Below, one piece after another: positions 1,440 through 61,663 of a stretch of 64,000 nt of DNA. The notes below the pieces were generated by a model. It saw nothing but the letters and a program-made list of their open reading frames with translations. It was not told the origin of the DNA and did not search any database. Source of the DNA: Octopus sinensis (Eukaryota); contig NC_042998.1 of the NCBI RefSeq assembly GCF_006345805.1, positions 113,832,001-113,896,000 of the forward strand. Reading direction: 5' to 3'. The translations under genes and the position numbers were made by a program. Position 1 is the first letter of the stretch; each line of letters starts with the position of its first letter.

Positions 1440-1780
1440 ATCGCATGGCTCAGTGGTTAGAGCATCGAGCTTACGATCGTGAGGTTGTGAGCTCGAATCC
1501 CGGACCGGGCTGCGTGTTGTGTTCTTGAGCAAAGCACTTTATTTCACATTGCTCCAGTTCACTCAGCTGTAGAAATGAGTTGCGACGTCACAGGTGCCAA
1601 GCTGTATCGACCTTTGTCTTTCCCTTGGGTAACACTGGTGGCGTGGAGGGGGGAGGCTGGTATGCATGGGCGACTGCTGGTCTTCCATAAACAACCTTGC
1701 CCGGACTTGTGTCTAGGAGGGTAACTTTCTAGGTGCAATCCCATGGTCATTCATGACCGAAGGGGGTCTTTACCCCTTAC

Positions 1781-2660: not shown

Positions 2661-2684
2661 AAATTTTCTAAGTTATATATATAC

Positions 2685-2732
<48 letters not shown>

Positions 2733-2754
2733 ATATACATACATAATATATATA

Positions 2755-3559
2755 CGAGGGTGGGCTGAAAAGTTCATAAGCTGACCACGATGCAATGGTC
2801 GAACTTCACCAAATGTAATATATTTTATGTCATAGTTTCCTCTGCCGTCCATACACTTCTTCCATCGGTGTTGCAGCGCTTGGATTCCCGTGGTATAGAA
2901 GCTCTCATCCTGACCCTCAAAAAAGTCCTCCACAGCAGATATGACCTCATCATCGGTCCGATACTGCTTCCCAGCCAAGTGTTTTTTTTTTTCCATGGTG
3001 GAGAACAGAAAGTATTCAGATGGTGCCAAACCAGGAGAATATGGAGGGGGATCAATCAGTTCAAAGACACAGTCGCGCACAGCAGCCATTGCAACTACAG
3101 ACTTGTGAGCAAGAGTACTGTCCTGGTGAAGCAGGGCCTCATTAACTATCTGATTAACATTACGTCTTTCATCCATTACCATGTTGTGAACATGGTCGAT
3201 GTTTTCGTGGGTGGTGGCTGTGACAGGACGTCCGGACCTTGGATCATCTTCAAAACTTTCCTATCCTTCTTGAATTCAGCTGCCCACTTTTCACAGTTGA
3301 TAAAGCTGGAGCATCATCCTCTAATGTTTCAACCATGTCAGCATGAATGTGTGCAGATATTTGATAACACCACGGTGCCAAATTTGATCCATTTTCAAGA
3401 AATGTCTCTAGTACTACTGTTCCAAGACCTCAATTCTGTACCCAATGTGAGTTTATTTGGAAAGAAAACATGCAGTTAGCATCATTAAAGGTTGCCAAGT
3501 TTAATTTCTGTATGATAACGCCTTCTTAGCTATCCTATAAACTTTCCAGCCTATTCTCG
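2755..3559 (-). mobile_element. Mariner transposon, internally deleted
   Basis: TA-flanked imperfect TIRs (CGAGGGTGGGCTGAAAAGTTCATA and the reverse complement CGAGAATAGGCTGGAAAGTTTATA); transposase motifs LLHQDS, PPYSPGLAPSEYFLF and RWKKC; the N-terminal part joins directly to HQD at about 3145. Confidence 0.93.
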
Positions 3560-4670: not shown

Positions 4671-5304
4671 TATATACATATATACGGAGAAAGAGACATG
4701 CAGACCGACTGCATATGTACACATGTGTGTATGTGTGCAAGTGCGTTTGCGACATTTTGTCTTCGAGCTGTATCGTATATACGAATACCCGCATGATGGT
4801 AGGTAGAGAATGTGTTAAATGAAACATAAGACAAAAGATGAAACCCAAAAATCAAAACAGCTACAAGAAACTTTTTTCCTCAGATCAAACTTTGAAACGG
4901 AAGTGACGACACACGGCTAAGTTTATAATTTTCTCGCGTAGAATACGAAGATGTTTTAGAACACTTCCGTTCTCCCACATTGTCTAACACTTCCAACTAA
5001 CTGGAAGATAAACAAAAGCAACAACAATAACAACACCCAACAATACACAGTATACTGGCGGCAATAATGCTTGTATCTATCTTTGTTAATGCATCTATGA
5101 ATACATGAAGTAATAAATGGCTAGAGAGTTCGGTGTAAAAGAAATTATGTTGATAAAGCCTAAAGTGTGGTGTTTTCGGCAAGTATTCATTTATTATGAA
5201 ATAGATGGGTGGTTGGGCAGAAGTCTTTCTTTGTAACATAATGAAAATGAAAACACGTTGTCCTCGGTAATTCTAACCACTTAAAAACACTAGTTTGTAT
5301 TTAT

Positions 5305-5515
5305 GGCGGCGAGCTGGCAGAATCGTCAGCACGCCGGGCAAAATGATTAGCAGCGTTTCGTCAGTTTCCACGTTCTGATTTCCAATTCCGCTAATGTTGA
5401 CTTTGCCTTCCATCCTTTCGGGATCGATGAAATAAGTACCAGTTGAACACTAGGGTCGATCTAATTGACTTAGTCTCTCCCCCAATATTTCTGGCCTTGT
5501 TCCAAAATTTGAAAC
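5305..5515 (+). mobile_element. SINE family C, tail-2 monomer
   Basis: GGCGGCGAGCTGGCAGAATCG head; GACTTTGCCTTCCATCCTTTCGGGATCGAT body; GGCCTTGTTCC tail. Confidence 0.85.
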
Positions 5516-5527
5516 AATTATTATCGT

Positions 5528-5596
5528 ACAGTTCTATATTTAAAAGATGAGGAGTTATGAATATTATTTAAATTATTTACATTTCACGGATATTTA
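5528..5596 (-). mobile_element. Inverted 3'-terminal fragment of the tRNA-hammerhead element
   Basis: ACAGTTCTATATTTAAAAGATGAGGAG...TATTTACATTTCACGGATATT matches 55863-55921 and is the reverse complement of the element end at 5849-5870. Confidence 0.75.
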
Positions 5597-5606
5597 CATT
5601 TTTGAC

Positions 5607-5893
5607 GGCATATGGTGTAGTGGTTAAGAGCGCGGGCTACTAACCTCAAGATTCCGTGTTCGATTCCAGGCTGTGACCTGAATAATAATAATAATAATAA
5701 TAACAATAATAATAATAATAATAATAACAACAACATCGAAAATACCTTAGGAATGAGAACCCAGGTTCGAAATTTCCCCAAGACACCTGATGAAGGCTGG
5801 AGGGTATATCAGCCGAAGCGTTGTGTTAAGAACAAACAAGATGAGAACAAATATCCGTCAAATGTAAATAAATATAAATAATATACATAATTA
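5607..5893 (+). mobile_element. tRNA-headed, hammerhead-containing SINE-like element (family 1)
   Basis: A box TGGTGTAGTGG 5613-5623, anticodon-like arm GGG-CTACTAA-CC, B box GTTCGATTCC 5658-5667, (AAT)n spacer, then hammerhead 5782-5827; homologous to 55863-56220. Confidence 0.8.
5782..5827 (+). ncRNA. Minimal type-I hammerhead motif (GAAA changed to GAAG)
   Basis: GACAC-CTGATGA-A-GGCTG-GAGGGTATAT-CAGCC-GAAG-C-GTT-GTGTT. Confidence 0.7.
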
Positions 5894-5905
5894 TTATCAT
5901 AACAT

Positions 5906-6100
5906 GGCAAACTGGCAGAATCGTTTAGAGGCGTTTCGTCCGTCTTTATATTCTGACAGAACAAGTTCAAATTCCGCCGAGGTTGACTTTGTCTTTCATC
6001 CTTTTGAGGCAGATGAAATAATTACCAGTTGAACATTGGGGTCGATGTAATCGGCTTAGCCCTACCCCTGAAATTGCTTGCGCCAAAATTTGAAATCAAA
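5906..6100 (+). mobile_element. SINE family C, diverged monomer
   Basis: CTGGCAGAATCGTT...GTTCAAATTCCGCCGAGGTTGACTTTGTCTTTCATCC...GGGGTCGATGTAATCG. Confidence 0.8.
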
Positions 6101-6332
6101 TTTCACAATTCCCTGTCATTACGGTTAAAGTGATGACGACCACTACAACAACTATAACAATAGCAACATCGATAACTCCATCGACATCAGCAACAGAAAC
6201 AACAACTGAAATAATCCAGTATTACTCAGTATAACGAGAGTCACAACGAGACGGCAACAACCAAAATGAAAGAACTACTACAATTACAACAAGAGCGCAA
6301 GGCCCAACAATAAAGCAACAACTGCAATTAAT

Positions 6333-6971
6333 CCTTTCTACTATAGGCACAAGGCCTGGAATCTAGGGGCAGGGGCTTAATCGATTACATCGAACCCAGT
6401 ACGCAATTAGTACTTATTTTATCGACCCCTAAAGGATGAAAGGCAAAATCGAACTCGGCGAAATTTGAGCTCAGAATCTAAAGATGGTCGAAATGTCGCT
6501 AAGTATTTTGCCCGGTGTGCTAACGTTTCTTATTTCTTTATTGCCCACAAGGGGCTAAACATAGAGGGGATAAACAAGGGCAGGATTAAGTCGATTCCAT
6601 CGACCCCGGTGCGTAACTGGTACTTAATTTATCGACCCCGAAAGGATGAAAGGCAAAGTCGAACTCGGAAGAATTTGAACTCAGAGCGAAAAGACAGACG
6701 AAATACCACTAAGCATTTCGCCCGGCGTGCTAACGTTTCTTATTTCTTTATTGCCCACAAGGGGCTAAACATAGAGGGGACAAACAAGGACAAAAGGGAT
6801 TAAGTCGATTACATCGACCCCAGTACGCAACTGGTACTTAATTTATCGACCCCGAAAGGATGAAAAGCAAAGTCAACCTCGCCGAAACTTGAACTCAGAA
6901 CACGAAGACAGACGAAATACCGCTAAGCATTTCGCCCGGCGTGCTAACGTTTCTGCCAGCTCGCCGCCTTG
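6333..6971 (-). mobile_element. SINE family C trimer flanked by a 15-bp direct repeat
   Basis: Three tandem bodies (tail-1, tail-1, tail-2); ACAACTGCAATTAAT at 6318-6332 and 6972-6986. Confidence 0.92.
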
Positions 6972-29284: not shown

Positions 29285-30514
29285 CAGTTGCGGCCAAAAT
29301 GTTCAGAACGGCATTGTTTTCGTCAGAAAAGTAAATATAAGTTTTTATTAAAGTTGTTTTATATTCTATAATATTCACACACAATAAATACAATATTAAT
29401 TGTTATTGTCTGAGATTTTGGTGTAATTTGAGAGGATAATACAAAAGTTATGGATGATTTAGTGATTTACTGCAAAACCCATGGCGGCCAAAATGATCAG
29501 AACGGTTGAAAAAATAAAATAATCAAAAATAACAGAGAATACTGGAATTATTTAATATTTAGTGTGAAGCCCTTTAGCTTCAATCACACTCTGACATTTT
29601 CGACTGCATGAGGAAATTAAATTTTCAATTTCTTGCTGGGTGATCTTATTCCATTCTTCCTGAAGGGCATTCCATAATTGCTCAGTTGTTTTAGGATTTC
29701 TGGCTTTCGAACGTTCTCCTAGAATATTCCATACATTTTCAATAGGATTGAGATCTGGGCTTTGAGCAGGCCAATCCATAACAATAACCTTTTCAGCCTT
29801 GAGGAAGTTCATGACCACCTTAGCCTTGTGACATGGGGCATTGTCCTGCATGAATATGGATGGTCGCTTAGTTGAATTTCTCAGCACAGGCAAGACATGA
29901 TCTTTTACAAGTTGTTTATAAACTCCTGCATTTACCTTTCCATGTAATCGCACCAAAGGGCCCACAATATCCCAGATATCATCCCCCAAACCATGACACT
30001 TCCTCCACCGAATTTAGCACTAGTCTTAACCACAATCATCGTAGGCCTTAAGAATACCGTGTACAATACTTTTTGATTTGTTAACAATCTTTGCAATAGA
30101 TCCAATACTTAAATTATCCTTCCTTCGAAGCTTAATAATCTGCTGACGAATTGGTAACGGAGTAAGTGGCATTATATTAACAAAGTACACTGCAAATATT
30201 CTTACTAATGTTCAGTAAACGAACCGTCACGTAAACAAATTCAAAACATTAGAGTTCGCCAGTTAAATATACTAAAACACGGAGTAAAAGCAACCGTTCT
30301 GATCATTTTGGCCGCCATGGGTTTTGCAGTAAATCACTAAATCATCCATAACTTTTGTATTATCCTCTCAAATTACACCAAAATCTCCGGCAATAACAAA
30401 TAATATCGTATTTATTGTGTGTGAAAATTATAGAATACAAAACAACTTTGATAAAAAATTATATCTACTTTTCTGACGAAAACAATACCGTTCTGAACAT
30501 TTTGGCCGCCACTG
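29285..30514 (-). mobile_element. Tc1-family (DD34E) transposon with about 224-bp IR/DR TIRs, internally deleted
   Basis: TA-CAGT...ACTG-TA ends; the direct repeat GCGGCCAAAATG(T/A)TCAGAACGG occurs at both ends of each TIR; KFGGGSVMVWG, FMQDNAPCH, WPAQSPDLNPIE (D34E); the N-terminal MPLTPLPIRQQIIKL...ILKAYDDCG is fused directly to VKTSAKFGGG. Confidence 0.95.
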
Positions 30515-39442: not shown

Positions 39443-39848
39443 TATTTCTTTACTGCCCACAGTAAACATAGAGGGGACAAACAAGGACAGATAAAGACAT
39501 TAAGTCGATTACATCGACCCCAGTGCGCAACTGGTTCTTATTTAATCGACCCCAAAAGGATGAAAGGCGAAGTCGACCTCGGCGGAATTTGAACTCAGAA
39601 CGTAACGGCAGATGAAATACCTATTTCTTTACTACCCACAAGGGGCTAAACACAAAGGGGACAAACAAGGACAGACACACGGATTAAGTCGATTACATTG
39701 ACCCCAGTGCGTAACTGGTACTTAATTTATCGACCCCGAAAGGATGAAAGGCAAATTCGACCTCGGGGGAATTTGAACTCAGAACGTAAAGGCAGACGAA
39801 ATAACGCTAGGTATTTTGCCCGGCGTGCTAATGATTCTGTCAGTTCAA
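39443..39848 (-). mobile_element. SINE family C nested dimer (two tail-1 units)
   Basis: Junction GAAATAGGTATTTC at about 39614-39627; diverged head. Confidence 0.88.
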
Positions 39849-50975: not shown

Positions 50976-51041
50976 ACATACATACATGCATGCATACATA
51001 CATATATACATACATACATATATACACATATATATATATAG

Positions 51042-51250
51042 TTAATCCAAACATGAAAACACAAAGAGAAAACACAACAACACGAGGACGTGGAACAAGT
51101 ATAGTATTATGGGTCGCTCAGGAAAGAAGGAAAGAAGGAGGGTTTAACGTTTCGAGCGGAGCTCTTCGTCAGAAACATAGGAAAAGGAAAGATCCAAAGA
51201 AGGGAAGACGGAAGGAAAAAAATCGCCAACGGTACACACGCGGTCACATT
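51042..51250 (-). mobile_element. Hammerhead-bearing Penelope pLTR-like element (family 2)
   Basis: Reverse-complement homologue of 1238-1428; abuts (TA)n. Confidence 0.72.
51142..51176 (-). ncRNA. Minimal type-I hammerhead ribozyme motif, core intact
   Basis: GTTT-CTGACGA-A-GAGC-TCC-GCTC-GAAA-C-GTT-AAAC; all conserved core bases present. Confidence 0.8.
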
Positions 51251-52367
51251 TTGAAAGACCGGAAGGGAATGGGTGAAGAAAAAGTTCTTTCAAAGACAGG
51301 GGAGTGCAAGAGGAGGTGTGTGTGTAAGTGTGGATATGTGCGTGAGCGCAGGTCTGCGTATGCGTGTGTGTGTATGTGCAATGATAACACGTGTGTGTGT
51401 GTGTGGTTGTGGCTGTTAATCTACGTGTGTGGTAGGGCTTAGTATTGTTTAAGGTCAAGGAAGAATGAATTAGGAGTGGCTCCCATGTGGAAGAACGGTC
51501 AGTGAAAGGTACTGGTAGTTTGAAGTATGTGTGTGTGTGCGTGTATGTATATGTATTGTGTGTGTGTTTTGTTTGTAGTGTGTGTGTGTGTGTATGTATG
51601 TGTGTGTTCGTGTGTGTATGTGTAGTGTTTGTGTGTGTGGCGAATAACTGTGCTTTACTTTGTGTATGTGTGTGTGCTCGTATGTGCGTATGAGTGTATA
51701 CATGTATGTATAATTGTGTGCGTGTATGTATAAGTGTGTGCGGTGTATATGGGATGTATATATATATATATAAATATATATACAAACATACATATACACA
51801 CTTACACACATATATATATATACACACATATATATATATATAGAGAGAGAGAGAGACACACATACACACACACATACACACACACACATACACACACATA
51901 CACACACACACACACACTCATATATATATATATATAATATATATAATATATATATATATATAAGAAAGAAAAGAAATGTAACAGTCACAGAAAGTTTGTA
52001 TAAAATAATTTATGGTGATATTAGGATCATATTACATCATTACATCATTACAAGTTAAATAAGTACCGGTTTCACGGTCAACGATTGTCAACTTATATAG
52101 AGAAAACTTTTTGTTGTCAGTAGGACGCCATCTTTGAAATAAGTAAATAGAGATGAAGCAATATGGCAAGGGGAGTAACTCTTATTTTTTCACGAAGCTC
52201 TTCAGTGTTTTGGCAAGCATGCAGTTACAGGAGTTATTTCATTTTATACACAGTTAATTATATTACCGTACTTGGTTTAAAGATTAAACAGTAATGTGTG
52301 AATGAGTGTATATGCATATATTTTATGCTCTAACATCTTATTTACTCTCTTGTAAAATATATATATG

Positions 52368-54275: not shown

Positions 54276-55349
54276 GGTGTATGTGTGCGTGTGATGTATG
54301 TGTGTGTATGTGTGTGCGCGCGCGCGCATGTGTGCGTGTGTGTGTATTTCACTAGTAGAAAGACCAACGGGTAAATAGAAGTAAATTGTCCATATTCATA
54401 TTCATTCTGTTGAAAAAACACAAAGTAGCGGTGGCGGCGGCAACAACAACAACAACATATAACATACCGATAATAAATAAATATATGCAAATATTGTTAA
54501 ACTAATTGGAGAAAGTAATTGCTGAAAGTAATCTATCATGTTTGAAAACGAAACTGACATCAGATAATAAAAGAAAACAGGGAACAAATTTCCAATTTGC
54601 GTACGACATAGTAAATTACTTTTATTACATGTTTTCTCTACAACACCAGGTTGTTGTTCAATGTTGTTTAACCTGGGGGGGTCATCTATGATTAAAAAGA
54701 CGTACGAGCGAAGAATTCCAGACTTGACCATCCTGTTGTGTTTTCGGGTATAGTGTGCCGAGGACTGCTTTATCTTAAGAGTTATTTTCCCCCCTGCCCT
54801 TTTGTAACAGGTACAACAGGAAAAACACTACGAACCGAAAAAGTTACGTGGGCGTTGATATTTTTTGTATATCTCTAGGTATTGAGTTCAAATCTTGCGA
54901 AGGTTAACTTTCGCTTTCGTTATTTCATGCTTAATAACTAAACAGTGAAGTCCGACGATCGATTATGCTTTCTTTTCTCCTTTTCTCCTCTCTCAGATCT
55001 GGCTATAGCCAGTAAAATGTTATACATGTAATTATATACATACATACTAATACATCTGTTTGTTGTCTACACCATCTGTGTTCGTCTTTTGTTTTTTTTT
55101 GTGAATTCTTAACAAACATACATACATACATACATGTATGCATACATGTATGCATACATACATACATACATACATGTATGCATACATGTATGCATACATA
55201 CATACATACATACATACATACAAACATAACACACACACACATGCACACACATACACACGCGCGCACACATACACGCGCGCGCACACATACACGCGCGCGC
55301 ACACACACACACACATACAACACATATGTTTAATAACTAGACATTTTAA

Positions 55350-55762
55350 GGCGGCGAGCTGGCAGAAACGTTAGTACGCCGGACGAAATGCTTAGCGGTT
55401 TTTCGTCTGCCGTTACGTTCTGAGTTCAAATTCCGCCGAGGTCGACTTTGCCTTCCATCCTTTCAGGGTCGATTAAATAAGTACTAGTTACGCACTGGGG
55501 TCGATGTAATCGACTTAATCCGTTTGTCTGTCCTTGTTTGCCCTCTCTGTGTTTAGCCTCTTGTGGGTAGTAAAGAAATAGGTATTTCGTCTGCCGTTAC
55601 GTTCTGAGTTCAAATTCCGCCGAGGTCGACTTTGTCTTTCATGCTTTCGGGGTCGATTAAATAAGTAGCAGCTACGCGCTGGGGTCGATGTAATCGGCTT
55701 AATCCTTTCTCCGTCCTTGTTTGTCCCCTCTATGTTTAGCCCCCTGTGGGCAATAAAGAAAT
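55350..55762 (+). mobile_element. SINE family C nested dimer (two tail-1 units)
   Basis: Full head, tail-1, junction GAAATAGGTATTTC at 55575-55588, second unit with tail-1. Confidence 0.92.
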
Positions 55763-55862
55763 GAATTACTAAACAGTGAAGTACTACTATATACATACAT
55801 ACATGCATATATATAAGATAATACACATTTCCGCGCTTTTAATAAAATACAATATTTTTTTC

Positions 55863-56093
55863 ACAGTTCTATATTTGAGAGATGAGGAACTATGTACATT
55901 ATTTACATTTGACGGATATTTGTCCTCATCTTCTTTGTTCTTAACACAATGTTTCGGCTGATATACCCTCCAGCCTTCATCAGGTGTCTTGGGGAAATTT
56001 CGAACCTGAGTTCACATTCCTAAGGTACTTTTCGATGTTATTATTATTCGAACTCGGAATCTTAGGGTTAGTAGCCCGCGCTCTTAACCACTA
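55863..56093 (-). mobile_element. tRNA-headed hammerhead element (family 1), copy 2
   Basis: Minus strand TAGTGGTTAAGAGCGCGGGCTACTAACCCTAAGATTCCGAGTTCGAATAATAA...GACACCTGATGAAGGCTG...CAGCCGAAACATTGTGTT...ATATAGAACTGT. Confidence 0.82.
55943..55988 (-). ncRNA. Minimal hammerhead motif (G16.2 changed to A)
   Basis: GACAC-CTGATGA-A-GGCTG-GAGGGTATAT-CAGCC-GAAA-C-ATT-GTGTT. Confidence 0.7.
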
Positions 56094-56220
56094 TGAGAAC
56101 TCAGGTTCGAAATTTCCCCAGGACACCTGGTGAAGACTGGAGGGTATATCAGCCGAAACGTTGTGTTAAGAACAAACAAGATGAGTACAAATATCCGTCA
56201 AATGTAAATAATGTAAATAT
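56094..56220 (+). mobile_element. Inverted 3' half of the family-1 element
   Basis: TGAGAACTCAGGTTCGAAATTTCCCC...TCAAATGTAAATAATG; head-to-head with 55863-56093. Confidence 0.85.
56122..56167 (+). ncRNA. Minimal hammerhead motif (CTGGTGA core variant)
   Basis: GACAC-CTGGTGA-A-GACTG-GAGGGTATAT-CAGCC-GAAA-C-GTT-GTGTT. Confidence 0.68.
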
Positions 56221-56719
56221 TTGTTTGTTTACATTTATACACATGCTCATGCGCGCAAACATACACATATCGTTTAGAATTCCTCTACATGTTCATGATA
56301 ATGATGGCCATGATGGTGATGTTGATCATTATGATGGTCATTATGAAAATGTTGATGAAAATCATGATGATGATAATGATAGAGGTGGTCGAGTGTTGAA
56401 TAGATACAGGCGAAAAAGAACTGTGTTACAATTGTTATATATCTGTTGATCTGATTGCCTGTGTACCAAATCCAACGATTCAGCGCCTGCGTTATCTATT
56501 GGCCTACTAGAAAACATACCCCAGACATCTCGTTGTCTTGTAAAGGACTAATTGCATAATGTTGAAGCGTTGGTAGGTTTAACCAGGTCCAACTTTCGAT
56601 TAAACAAGAACTATTGCTTAGCCTGTAAATAATAACCGTCTCATCTTCTTGAAATCATGGCTTTTATGTTTATTTAATTCCTTCTGTTTGTTATGTTAAA
56701 TTAATCCTATGTAAATAGT

Positions 56720-59700
56720 CGGATGGTATTTGTGTCAGGTCTCCGCTTGGAGCTACTGGTAACATGTAACCCAGTACAACCTGTTACATGGTCGGGTCGT
56801 TGGCGACTAAACTGGCAACCCCACCAAGATTTCTTGGTGAGGAGGGTGATTGGACACCCAGCAGGACTAAAAACAAAACCTGTCAAAGGGCAGAGGAACT
56901 CTCTCATGAGTCAATGGCCATCCAAAATCCGGAGTGGAGCCCCTAAGGCGGTTGGATTGCGTCATGCGTGCCACCTTCCGGCAGCTCCTGCATCTTGGTC
57001 TACCCCCAGTCGTCTTGACTTTGTCTTGCCACTGGATCCGGCGCACACCAGGACGAGAGAGTGAGGCTGATCCTGCGCAAGTCACCCTCACTATAATCCA
57101 AGTCACGCGCATGTCACGACATCATGACGCCATGACACCATCCCAAAGTCCTGTGGCGATGGGGAAACGGCGAAGTAGCAGGTGAGGATACACTGGGAGC
57201 TGCAGTCGTGAACCCACAACAGGCGGCTCAGGACATGTGGTCGCCCCTCACTGAACTGAGGCAGCAGTGGAGTCCGGCAGCCTCCTGAGTGACCGAGCAG
57301 CCCTCTTCAGGATCGCTCTGCTCGCCTCCCAGCATGAGGACGGGGCTAGAAAAGGTTGCCCTAAACATAGCCTGCCTCACCTCACCCTGGTCAGCAAACC
57401 GCGGCTGGCGGGGATCCTTTCCAAGCGGTCGAAACAAAGAAAGAAGAAAACAAACAAAGGTGCTCACTTTCGCACTTGGAACGTGAGAACTCTGCTTGAT
57501 AACACCAAAGCGGACAGACCAGAGACGACTAACTGCCCTGGTGGCCAGAAACTGAGCCGATACAGTGTCGATATTGCAGCACTGAGCGAGACCCGCCTTG
57601 CGGACAAAGGCCAGCTGACAGAGACAGGCGGCGGCTACACTTTCTTTTGGAGTGGTCGCAGCAGCGAAGAGCGTCGTGAGGCTGGTGTTGGTTTTGCCAT
57701 TAAGTCAGTACACGTGCGGAAACTGGAAAGCCCCCCCGAGGGTATCAACGATCGGCTGATGAAAATGCAGCTCCACTTGGAAACAAGACTAGTGCGACCA
57801 TCATCAGTGCTTACGCCCCCACCATGACCAACCCTGAAGAAGTTAGGACAGGTTCTATGAGGAACTCGACTCCCTCATCACGTCAGCCCAGCCTGGGAAG
57901 CTCATCCTCCTTGGGGATTTTAACGCCCGTGTCGGGACTGACCACCAAGCCTGGCATCGCGTACTGGGAAAGCAAGGAATCGGAAGTGCAACAGCAACGG
58001 ACAGCTCCTCCTGCGTGCGTGTGCCTCTCATGATCTTACCATCGCCAACACCTTGTTCCGTCTGCCAACACGCAACAAGACATCATGGATGCATCCACGC
58101 TCCAAACACTGGCATCTGATAGATTACGTCATCGTCAGGGCGAAAGACAGGCGGGACGTGAGACTGGTCAAAGCCATGTGCGGAGCTGACTGCTGGACGG
58201 ACCATCGCCTCATCATCTCCAGGATGGATTTCTACATCCGACCTAAGAGAAGACCACAGGGTCAGAAAGTGACGAGGAAGCTTAACATCACGAAATTAAG
58301 GAACCAGCTGACTGCACAAGATCTCCAGTCACGTATGGACAGTAAGCTGTTGGACATTCGGAGTGACCAGTCCAGCATCGATGAGCAGTGGGATCATTCA
58401 GGGACACGGTTCATTCCATCGCCCTTGAAACTCTGGGCCAAATTACGAGGAACCACCAGGACTGGTTCGACGAAAACGACCAGGAAATCCAAAAGCTCCT
58501 GAAGAGAAACGCCGTCTGCGCGGGCTCACCAAAATGACACCACCTGCACGGCAAAGAAGGCCGCTTTCAACAACATTCGCAGCACAGTCCAGGCTAAACT
58601 CCGCCTCATGCAAGATGCATGGTTAAGCGCCAAGGCGGATGAGATTCAGGGATACGCAGACAACACGACACCAAGAAATTCTACGAGGCGCTGAAAGCTG
58701 TCTATGGACCGCAGTTCTCCTTTGGATCAACCCCCCTGCTCAGCTCAGATGGAACCTCACTCCTGACTAACAAGAGGCTGATCCTGGAGAGATGGGCGGA
58801 GCACTTCAACATCGTGCTCATCAACCACCAGCCCAGATCAACGAGGAAGCCATCGCACGACTCCCCCAGGTGCCGACAAACCACGAGTTGGCTGTTCCCC
58901 CTCTGCAGTCGGGGAAGTGAGCAGAGCCATCAAAAAATGTCCACCGGCAAAGCTCCATGCTCTGACGCCATCCCTGCAGAGGTGTTCAAGTCGGGAGGCC
59001 CCACCATGATCAGTCAGCTCACCAGCCTGTTCCAGTCGATGTGGGACAGGGAACAACTCCCTCAAGATTTCCGGGATGCAACAATCGTCCACATTTATAA
59101 GCGGAAAGGAGATCGGCAGTCCTGCGACAACCACCGAGGTATTTCCCTCTTGTCCATAGCAGGCAAGATCCTGGCCCGGGTCCTGCTTGACCGCCTTCTG
59201 GAACACTTGGAGCAAGGCCTTCTCCCTGAGAGCCAGTGTGGCTTCCGTGCGGGTCGAGGGACCACTGACATGATATTCGCCGCCCGCCAGCTCCAGGAGA
59301 AATGCATGGAGCAGCACCTTGACCTCTGCATGACCTTTGTTGACCTCACCAAGGCCTTTGATACAGTCAGTCGGGAGGGACTATGGAAGGTCATGGGAAA
59401 TTTGGTTGCCCCAGCAAATTTATTGCAATTGTCCGCCAGTTCCACGACGGAATGACAGCCAGAATCCTTGAGGACGGCGACTCATCTGAAGCCTTCCAGG
59501 TGACCAACGGAGTCAGGCAGGGCTGTGTCCTGGCCCCAACACTGTTCAGCATCATGTTCTCGGCAATGATGTCCGACGCCTTTAGGGACTGCAAGTCCGG
59601 TATCAACATCAAGTACAGGACAGACGGGAACTTTTCAACTCCAGGAGATTGCAGGCTGTCACAAAGGTGAGGGAGACAGTCGTCAGAGACTTTCTCTTTG

Positions 59701-60697
59701 CTGACGACTGCGCCCTTAATGCAATCGATGAGCAGGAGATGCAGCTCGAGATGGACAGGTTCTCATCAGCCTGTGACAACTTCGGTCTCACCATCAGTGC
59801 AAAGAAAACCGAAGTGATTTTCAGCCAGCCCCCGGCAAACAATACCATGAGCCTCAGATAAGGGTGAACGGACGGATCTTACGAGTGGTGGAAAACTTCA
59901 CCTACCTGGGCAGCACTCTCTCCTGCAATGCCAACATAGATGCTGAAACCATCAACAGAATCTCCAAGGCAAGCAGCGCGTTTGGGAGACTGCGAAAGAA
60001 AGTCTGGGAGCGGAGAGGAATCAGCCTCAACACCAAGCTGAAAGTCTACCGGGCAGTCGTGCTTACCACTCTACTATACGGCTGCGAGACGTGGACTGCT
60101 TACCGAAGGCACGAGCGCCAGATAAACCACTTCCATCTCAGGTGTCTCGGAATCTCCTTCACATCCGCTGGCAGGACAAAGTCCCAGACACGGAAGTTCT
60201 GAAGCAGGCAGATCTCCCTAGCACCATCACAATCATGCGCAGGCCCAGCTGAGATGGGCGGGCCACGTCTCCCGCATGTCCGACACTCGCATCCCAAAAC
60301 AGCTCTTCTACGGTGAACTCGGCCAGGGCAGGCGCAAAGTCGGAGGGCAGAAAAAGCGCTACAAGGATAGTCTCAAGGTCTCTCTCAAAGACTTCTCTCC
60401 ATCGGAACAGAGACCTGGGAGACACTTGCTGCCAACCGCTCATCCTGGCGCAGCGCAATCACCGTGGGAGCAGGGACAAAGCCGAGGAGGGACGGATTCG
60501 GTCAGCGGAGCAGAAACGTCAGATGCGTAAAGTCAGAGCCGCCTGCACCAGTAGCACTGCCCCTACCCACTTCTCTGCCCCACCTGTGGGAGGGCTTCCT
60601 TGCCCGGATTGGCCTCACCAGCCACCTCCGGTCTCATGGCGGCAGTTCCATCAGATGATGTCAGTTGGTCATCTTCGAACCGAAGGACGAACATTAT
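56720..60697 (+). mobile_element. Near full-length RTE-clade LINE (APE + RT + C-terminal CCHH), frameshifted
   Basis: ORF begins about 57334; [134 protein letters not shown]...SHLRSH; 3' end GGTCATCTTCGAACCGAAGGACGAAC. The 5' boundary is approximate. Confidence 0.96.
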
Positions 60698-61663
60698 TTA
60701 TGCACACAACACAGACACAAATACACACACACACACACGCGCGCGCACACATACACACGCACTTACACCTTGGTACATAGGAAGATAGATACATAGATAA
60801 TTACTTGCTTAGCTTTTGAGAGCGAAAATGAAAGGTGGTCATTGATTTAAAATGTACCATCATAATACAGGAAGAATATATCGGAAAAAATATCGTTCTA
60901 GATGCACTCTTAGGGAACTAACTGGCGAAATCGTTAGAACGTCTGATGGAATATTTCTTAGTATTTCTTCTTAGTCTGTTCTGAGTTCAAATCCTACCGC
61001 GGTTAAATTTTAGAATCAATATAGAAGTAAGAATTCAGTGGTGGCGGATGTACGGAACTGTAAGAACACTAGACCGAATGCTTTGAGGTTTTTGGTCCGG
61101 CTCTTTGCATTCTGAGTCCAGATCTCTTGCTCTCTACTTGGGTGAAGATTTAATCATTTGTCCAATTTCATACTCGTTCCAAATTTTGGCACAAGGCCAG
61201 TAATTTCGGCTTATTTATTTTATCGAGCCCGAAAGGATGAAAGGCAATGTAAACCTCAGAAGAATTTGGACTCAGAACGTAAGAATAGACACATCCAGTT
61301 TAATATTACTACCAGGCACCCTGAGTAAGTAGCTTTAGCAGAGTTCATTGGGGCCCGCTTTCTGGTTTAAATATGCCGTAAAAAGAGCATGTAAAGATAT
61401 TGTAAAAGGGGCATGACTCTGGCTTCCTCTCCACCACCAAAAGTTCCCTGAAAATGAGAGGTTGGCTACATCTGGAACGCCTTTGATCACTGTTCCGCCC
61501 AATCAGGACCGACATAGTGATTAAATAATAACAACAACAGTATTTAATTTACTGTAAATTACTTCAGATCATTGCAACTATTTTTATTCACCACATTAAT
61601 CTACCATCCTGGTTTTAAATAAGTGGTTACTTTTTATTCCCGCTTTCAAAAACGAGGCCAGAA

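Follow-up and report, generated by a model that had tools for sequence, protein, structure and literature searches.

Results

A repeat of Octopus sinensis, composed of a transfer RNA (tRNA)-like head, a microsatellite spacer and a 3' module containing a hammerhead motif, was characterized in a single window of 64 kb of AT-rich animal DNA, the positions of which are used for all sequence coordinates. Judged from the DNA of its copies and their flanks, the element is probably a non-autonomous short interspersed element (SINE) of ~300 nt that has a tRNA-type promoter and uses the machinery of Penelope-like elements (PLEs). The 3' module measures ~150–180 nt, and its minimal hammerhead ribozyme motif (min-HHR) lies ~65–95 nt from the 3' end. 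Copies in the window were located by BLAST and nhmmer family profiles, and the family survey covers three of them (copies A, B and C) at two loci; the nhmmer family profiles yielded no additional diverged copies in the window.

Structure of the two insertions

Copy A is contained in a 363-bp insertion at 5526–5888 (locus 1) that reads on the + strand and is bracketed by a 10-bp direct repeat, AATTATTATC, found at 5516–5525 and, in identical form, at 5889–5898. Flanking repeats as good as this target-site duplication were encountered empirically at ~0.1% of window positions. An earlier reading of the same DNA, made from the letters alone and henceforth referred to as the sequence-only reading, had expected target-site duplications to be absent, which is contradicted by the clear 10-bp duplication at this locus.

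The insertion begins with a 31-nt tail on the − strand (5526–5556), the long 3' terminus of the element (...AACTCCTCATCTTTTAAATATAGAACTGTAC), which aligns both with the end of copy B and with the C-terminus of an Octopus bimaculoides database protein, A0A0L8FV75. The tail is followed by an inverted, 5'-truncated twin of the element's 3' region (5557–5599, − strand), identified by its inverted repeats and by an nhmmer match at 5595–5561 on the minus strand. The remainder of the insertion, all on the + strand, comprises the tRNA-like RNA polymerase III (Pol III) head at 5606–5680, an internal (AAT)n/(AAC)n microsatellite spacer at 5681–5735 (period 3 and 15.7 copies by TRF), and the 3' module, or body, at 5736–5888, which ends in the short terminus ...AATATACAT and is 93–94% identical to copies B and C. 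The (AAT)n spacer that had been noted after the head was confirmed, with the run extending over 5681–5727/35; copy B contains a shorter run at the same position.

The inverted arms of locus 1, at 5555–5595 and 5849–5890, are 90–96% complementary. The left arm extends ~31 nt beyond the right one (5526–5556) and there matches the longer 3' end of copy B; at this locus the inverted twin alone carries the tail, which the right end of copy A lacks. No poly(A), A-rich or simple-repeat tail of the kind associated with long interspersed elements (LINEs) was found at the 3' ends of the element, and no TTTT occurs on the sense strand within it. A second short inverted match to the 3' region was observed at 5593–5608, between the twin and the head (TTTACATTTTTGACGG versus CCGTCAAATGTAAA); possible readings of this match are an aborted second cDNA, filler at the junction and the element's true 5' end.

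Locus 2 spans 55862–56222 and displays the same inverted arrangement with the tail outermost. Copy B (55862–56094, − strand; detected by BLAST and nhmmer) starts within the A box region of a truncated head and continues through a short AAT run and the body to the long 3' terminus, the last 29 nt of which form its tail (55862–55890, − strand). Copy C (56093–56222, + strand; detected by BLAST and as an inverted repeat) is a 5'-truncated twin that stands head-to-head with copy B and ends in the short terminus. The inverted repeat of this locus is 130 nt long, pairing 55888–56017 with 56093–56222 at 93% complementarity. Copies A, B and C are pairwise 93–94% identical at two loci that are otherwise unrelated, and the head of copy B is 93% identical to that of copy A. 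Because copies A and B share the junction of head, (AAT)n run and body, the composite was mobilised as one unit at least twice.

An inverted, 5'-truncated twin thus adjoins the 5' end at both of the two loci, and both possess a one-sided extension of ~30 nt, being 31 nt (5526–5556) at the first and 29 nt (55862–55890) at the second. The long end, ...CATAGTTCCTCATCTCTCAAATATAGAACTGTG, is carried by the locus 1 twin and by copy B, and the opposite ends, those of copies A and C, stop within ~1 nt of each other at ...AATATACAT and ...AATGTAAATA. Since the extra ~30 nt are conserved between the loci and at the C-terminus of A0A0L8FV75, they represent element sequence and not target sequence. PLE insertions are 5'-truncated and often form partial tandems, and an adjacent inverted 5'-truncated copy together with a 30–40-bp tail extension at one end are signatures of PLE insertion (Craig et al., PMC8557442).

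The inverted copy of the element's own 3' terminus that the sequence-only reading had placed upstream of the head was therefore confirmed, and it recurs at locus 2. The further proposal that the hammerhead and the inverted piece point to Penelope was strengthened by the minimal form of the ribozyme and by the insertion structure at 2/2 loci, while the PLE partner of the element is one that we infer from this architecture alone. Such a partner plausibly exists, because annotation of the O. vulgaris genome has revealed 30 recently active Penelope families, along with hundreds of unclassified SINE families (PMC13282606).

A flanking 10-bp duplication and inverted repeats close to both ends, as observed at locus 1, would also be expected of a DNA transposon of the foldback or miniature inverted-repeat (MITE) type with terminal inverted repeats. 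This origin is extremely improbable. At their outermost bases the two ends fail to complement each other, the left end carrying 31 extra nt; the inverted arm measures ~40 nt at locus 1 and 130 nt at locus 2, and its inner break point is not the same at the two; and one copy is truncated inside its head, which is the pattern of 5' truncation of a cDNA and not that of a fixed terminal repeat. A MITE was excluded on the non-complementary termini and on the arm lengths and inner break points that differ between the loci.

Minimal hammerhead motif

The hammerhead of copy A lies at 5782–5827 on the + strand, was picked up in the descriptor search, and has its predicted scissile bond between 5822 and 5823. 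The descriptor used here called for helix I of >=4 bp, CUGANGA, one unpaired base, and helix II of >=4 bp closed by a G10.1-C11.1 pair, followed by GAAA, paired 15.2/16.2, and then U and H. In its exact form it returned 1 site in the window and 0 in 200 shuffles; with one deviation allowed, 4 sites were returned in the window and 0 in 60 shuffles.

The motif of copy A reads GACAC / CTGATGA / A / GGCTGG..TCAGCC / GAAG / C G T T / GTGTT, with a 5-bp helix I, a 6-bp helix II, a bulged A5794 and a G5795-C5814 pair. Its one core change is A15.1 to G at 5818 (GAAG), where copies B and C both have GAAA. The motif of copy B (55943–55988, − strand, by the descriptor) has G16.2 changed to A (ACAUU), and that of copy C (56123–56168, + strand) has A6 changed to G plus one helix II mismatch. 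The core substitutions of the three copies are without exception transitions, none of them shared between copies. The majority consensus of A, B and C is free of defects and reads GACAC-CUGAUGA-A-GGCUGG(AGGGUAUA)UCAGCC-GAAA-C|G-U-U-GUGUU, with the core pattern CUGAUGA-A-G...C-GAAACGUU. The core boxes CUGANGA and GAAA, together with U16.1 and H17, are all present in this consensus, and the single copies carry 1–2 substitutions. Loss of the CTGANGA/GAAA core from a consensus, which the sequence-only reading had named as evidence against itself, is accordingly not seen in the majority consensus of the three copies. The type-I fold with stems I and II and GAA(G)C-GTT that it described was borne out at 5782–5827, in the form lacking helix III that is typical of Penelope.

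In the consensus an A stands unpaired between A9 and G10.1, G10.1 pairs with C11.1, and helices II and I comprise 6 and 5 bp, respectively. Helix III and loop 3 are missing, and positions 15.2–16.2 form the self-complementary ACGU (GAAA-C|G-UU). The min-HHR of metazoan PLEs was defined by Cervera & de la Pena 2014 (PMC4209133) by an unpaired nucleotide between A9 and G10.1, a conserved G10.1-C11.1 pair, a long helix II, a short helix I, no loop 3 and a palindromic 15.2–16.2. Three of these min-HHR features lay outside the search descriptor of that study and were used there as an argument against chance (PMC4209133); all three are present in the octopus element. By its architecture, as read from the DNA, the motif is a Penelope-type min-HHR.

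The minimum free energy fold of the monomer includes helices I and II. RNAcofold of two hammerhead units returned the trivial full duplex only and is uninformative on an active dimer. The window as a whole and slices of 81–95 nt gave no match to the Rfam 15 hammerhead families (type I/III, HH9, HH10 and II), either at the gathering threshold or at E<=10, a miss that is expected because the curated models include helix III. A B-box-like string, GGTTCGAAATT, was also observed in the body just 5' of the hammerhead (5766–5776); it could be a remnant of another tRNA-like unit.

A second hammerhead family, unrelated to the tRNA-headed element, is present in the window as two descriptor-matched copies that are 93% identical: one at ~51040–51340 on the − strand with its hammerhead at 51142–51176, and one at 1234–1437 on the + strand with its hammerhead at 1290–1324. 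The motif of one copy is flawless (GUUU-CUGACGA-A-GAGC(UCC)GCUC-GAAAC|GUU-AAAC), and that of the other is altered to CUGACGC-G. The two copies are 5'-truncated to unequal extents, and both terminate with ...CATGTTTGGATTAAC immediately against a (TA)n microsatellite, in keeping with the preference for microsatellites reported for PLEs. A tRNA-like head could not be seen in this family. The core, the bulge, the G10.1-C11.1 pair and ACGU are identical between the two families, and 4/4 pairs of helix I and 3/4 pairs of helix II have both sides changed with pairing retained. As comparisons of sequence, these paired changes are the nearest approach to covariation in the data.

The hammerhead also bears on the manner of propagation. 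A retrozyme-like cycle, in which a dimer cleaves itself, is ligated into a small circle and is copied from that circle, would find some support in the AACGUU palindrome, through which two RNAs could share helix III, and in the proposal that animal retrozymes depend on PLEs (PMC7229834; bioRxiv 10.64898/2026.07.22.740005). The window, however, contains no head-to-tail tandem anywhere and inverted pairs only, each copy has a single hammerhead of the minimal, low-activity type and not the canonical one, and no copy begins at the predicted cleavage site. With neither a tandem array nor a copy starting at that site, the circular-RNA route is unsupported and is considered highly improbable. The retrozyme half of the hybrid proposed by the sequence-only reading was consequently not upheld, there being no tandem copies and no canonical hammerhead.

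An ordinary tRNA SINE mobilised by a LINE would require the hammerhead to be coincidental and the inverted pieces to have been produced by twin priming or a local rearrangement. SINEs that look LINE-dependent abound in the window, which also contains one LINE, and the Rfam hammerhead models do not match. Against a coincidence stand the absence of the motif from the 200 and 60 shuffles and its possession of four PLE min-HHR features that lie outside the descriptor. Twin priming, moreover, inverts an upstream part of the RNA, whereas both arms share the 3' end at both loci, and the A-rich or simple-repeat tail of such an element is missing. Mobilisation by a LINE is thus quite improbable. Twin priming of the L1 type was rejected as a source of the inverted arms, since it would not duplicate the 3' terminus, unlike what is seen at both loci.

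Promoter boxes and the tRNA-like head

Within the head of copy A, an A box (TGGTGTAGTGG, 5613–5623) and a B box (TGTTCGATTCC, 5657–5667) each match the consensus at 10/11 positions, and their starts are 44 nt apart, the spacing of a tRNA. Searching with <=1 mismatch per box at tRNA spacing, this pair was the single occurrence in 64 kb and had no counterpart in 60 dinucleotide shuffles. The sequence-only reading had described a Pol III tRNA-like head with exactly this A box, and its B box is likewise present, starting one base earlier than the 5658–5667 it had given. From these boxes, a Pol III SINE nature of the element is plausible. A relaxed ARAGORN call at 5614–5678 was rejected as evidence, as shuffles yield ~3 such calls per 64 kb.

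Several results weigh against a PLE-mobilised SINE with a Pol III promoter. The Rfam 15 tRNA model gave no match to the head, even at E<=10 on a 95-nt slice, ARAGORN at default settings returned no tRNA, and shuffled sequence folds about as well as the head (z = -0.48). As the tRNA covariance model and default ARAGORN both fail, the promoter boxes alone speak for a tRNA ancestry of the head. The placement of these boxes at the 5' end is seen in one copy only, and, as only that copy has a complete head, the 5' end of the element can be placed no more closely than within 5597–5609. Neither locus contains a partial tandem of the kind that forms a pseudo-long terminal repeat (pLTR) or a direct duplication of the element, and no PLE is found within the 64-kb window. 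The target duplication at locus 2 is weak and ambiguous, comprising ~6–7 AT-rich bases. At least one disabling hammerhead substitution is present in every genomic copy, and the sample consists of only three copies at two loci.

Alternatively, the tRNA-like stretch may be only the passenger of a Penelope derivative that is non-autonomous or 5'-truncated, namely a piece of an older SINE or of a tRNA pseudogene picked up through template switching or by nested insertion. Read-through or a PLE-type Pol II promoter, and not Pol III, would then account for transcription. The PLE reverse transcriptase (RT) has been reported to retrotranspose sequences other than its own in trans, and Penelope elements that are short and non-autonomous have been described (PMC8557442, PMC6685494). 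The failure of the head with tRNA models, a fold no better than random, and the second hammerhead family, in which a min-HHR occurs with no visible head, are all compatible with a passenger. The boxes themselves argue the other way, each matching 10/11 positions at exact tRNA spacing as the sole such pair in 64 kb, and so does the 5' junction of copy A, which falls within a few bases of the expected start of a Pol III transcript. Copy B is truncated at a point inside the head, so the mobilised RNA included the head. A passenger origin is accordingly viewed as rather unlikely, and a SINE transcribed from its own head and integrated by PLE machinery is preferred.

Neighbouring sequences and relatives

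An older, abundant SINE family adjoins both hammerhead loci, with ~20 copies in the window that are 74–86% identical. Copies flank locus 1 at 5290–5515 and 5899–6110, and the ~20 other sites include 55345–55517, 6346–6968 and 39501–39843. The locus 1 insertion lies in the AT-rich spacer between two tandem copies of this family, and the identity of only 74–86% among the older copies indicates that the hammerhead element is younger than the SINE that flanks it.

All three copies share an open reading frame across the body (MRTQVRNFPKTPDEGWRVYQPKRCVKNKQDE..), at 5753–5881 (+), 56093–56260 (+) and 56032–55862 (−). Protein searches with this frame gave a sole match, the 51-aa O. bimaculoides entry A0A0L8FV75 (P0001), at 82–83% identity. 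The entry is annotated as 'uncharacterized protein' and contains the same body and tail sequence as the element; it is most likely a spurious gene call on the repeat. This match assigns the family to Octopus. Two conserved strings of the element, scanned as exact patterns against collections of viral sequences, prokaryotic genomes and metagenomes, gave 0 matches.

The window is also packed with SINEs, microsatellites and mariner fragments. A decayed LINE with AP-endonuclease and RT frames occupies 57267–60780 (+ strand), its nearest relatives in the databases, from tapeworms, a lancelet and the snail Nucella, being 60–85% identical; contig L001, reached via relatives of its RT, is without any of the SINEs of the window. 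Two fragments of mariner-type transposase lie at 2673–3182 and 29552–29989 (− strand), and another tRNA-headed SINE (GCATGGCTCAGTGGTTAGAGC...) was observed at 1441–1700 (+ strand).

Discussion

A sequence of events that would account for both insertions can be proposed. Pol III would initiate at the head and read through the 3' module, and the RT-endonuclease of an autonomous PLE would recognise that module in trans. The endonuclease would then nick both strands ~10 bp apart at an AT-rich target, the corresponding duplication being visible at locus 1. Both nicks may prime reverse transcription on the 3' ends of SINE RNAs, and the two opposite cDNAs would meet head to head, one usually 5'-truncated, giving the structure present at both loci. 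One cDNA would begin at the true end of the RNA and the other ~30 nt inward. As to the origin of the chimera, it probably arose, speculatively, through insertion of the 5'-truncated 3' end of a PLE into the (AAT)n tail of a tRNA-like element of greater age.

The role of the hammerhead in such a cycle merits separate comment. Lacking helix III, it could complete an active site only by ACGU-ACGU pairing with a second RNA. Cleavage at the predicted site, between GUU and G (5822 and 5823), would split the promoter from the 3' recognition module, and propagation would therefore need uncleaved RNA, a need that a monomer-inert hammerhead fits (PMC4209133, PMC6765202). It is thus more likely, by this reasoning, that the motif is kept as part of the module recognised by the RT, or was inherited from the PLE, than that it serves RNA processing of this SINE. 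If cleavage is indeed self-defeating here, the role of the PLE hammerhead would point to RT recognition over RNA processing.

SINEs are defined by their dependence on LINEs. If the octopus element does depend on PLEs, the SINE concept would reach a third retrotransposon class. A small and easily scored reporter for PLE integration would also become available, since an insert of 300 bp is enough to read the inverted twins and the one-sided tail. Taken to its full extent, the argument would make this the first Pol III tRNA-type SINE with a PLE and not a LINE as partner, born of a PLE 3' end in the microsatellite tail of a tRNA-like element, and would account for at least part of the thousands of orphan dispersed minimal hammerheads of animal genomes as tails of PLE-dependent SINEs; this extended claim is judged somewhat less likely than not.

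Comparison with known systems

Schistosoma's SINE-like retroposons Sm-alpha and Sj-alpha were reportedly described by Ferbeyre in 1998 and Laha in 2000, and dispersed minimal hammerheads of metazoan PLEs are said to have been treated by Lunse et al. in 2017. The sequence-only reading had not recognised the octopus element as a described family. This holds in one respect, in that a tRNA-promoter SINE with a PLE-type tail was not found in the literature, and not in others, since Sm-alpha and Sj-alpha, the dispersed PLE min-HHRs and PLE-dependent elements are all known. Full-text literature searches turned up no account of a tRNA-promoter SINE with a PLE-type tail, although curation as a plain 'SINE2/tRNA' in Repbase, Dfam or SINEBase is possible.

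The tRNA-derived SINE-like elements with hammerheads in schistosomes, Sm-alpha and Sj-alpha, have been known since 1998 (PMC6765202, PMC2770079). As in the octopus element, a tRNA-derived promoter region of Pol III type and a type-I hammerhead are united in one transcript of a short non-coding retroposon, and the copy number is high. The Sm-alpha hammerhead, in contrast, is canonical, with loops and a short helix III, and is detected by Rfam, whereas that of the octopus element is without helix III and is missed. Copies of Sm-alpha are often in tandem, with the promoter ending 3' of the cleavage site, while the octopus copies are dispersed, with the promoter 5' of the ribozyme and with inverted twins. 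The host phylum also differs, and the likeness is judged by description and not by sequence.

Metazoan non-LTR (long terminal repeat) retrozymes resemble the octopus element in being small (~170–400 nt), AT-rich and non-coding, in having a type-I hammerhead, and in their supposed use of PLE machinery (Cervera & de la Pena 2020, PMC7229834; Li et al. 2026 preprint). They have been termed 'a new type of SINE' (PMC8969392; 2026 preprint). Retrozymes are arranged head-to-tail in tandem, contain a canonical hammerhead, lack a Pol III head and are expressed as circular RNA. The octopus element, by comparison, occurs as dispersed monomers and combines a min-HHR with a tRNA-type promoter, inverted twins and a target duplication.

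Non-autonomous PLEs, such as MRC1 of Chlamydomonas and the short Penelope of Heliconius (PMC8557442, PMC6685494), share with the octopus element a short length, a PLE-type 3' end and the insertion architecture. They differ in being deletion derivatives that form pLTRs, and none has been reported with a Pol III tRNA-like head.

The dispersed min-HHRs of PLEs are known in thousands and are read as truncated PLEs (PMC4209133, PMC7761336). They have been interpreted as parts of pLTRs or of truncated PLEs, with no Pol III head reported upstream, and in this they differ from the octopus element. In motif architecture the two are identical, and single dispersed motifs are common to both. Opposite-strand pairs of motifs 100–700 bp apart, as described in PMC4209133, correspond to the arrangement at locus 2. 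If the octopus element is a PLE-dependent SINE, it would give an identity to some of the many dispersed minimal hammerheads in animal genomes.
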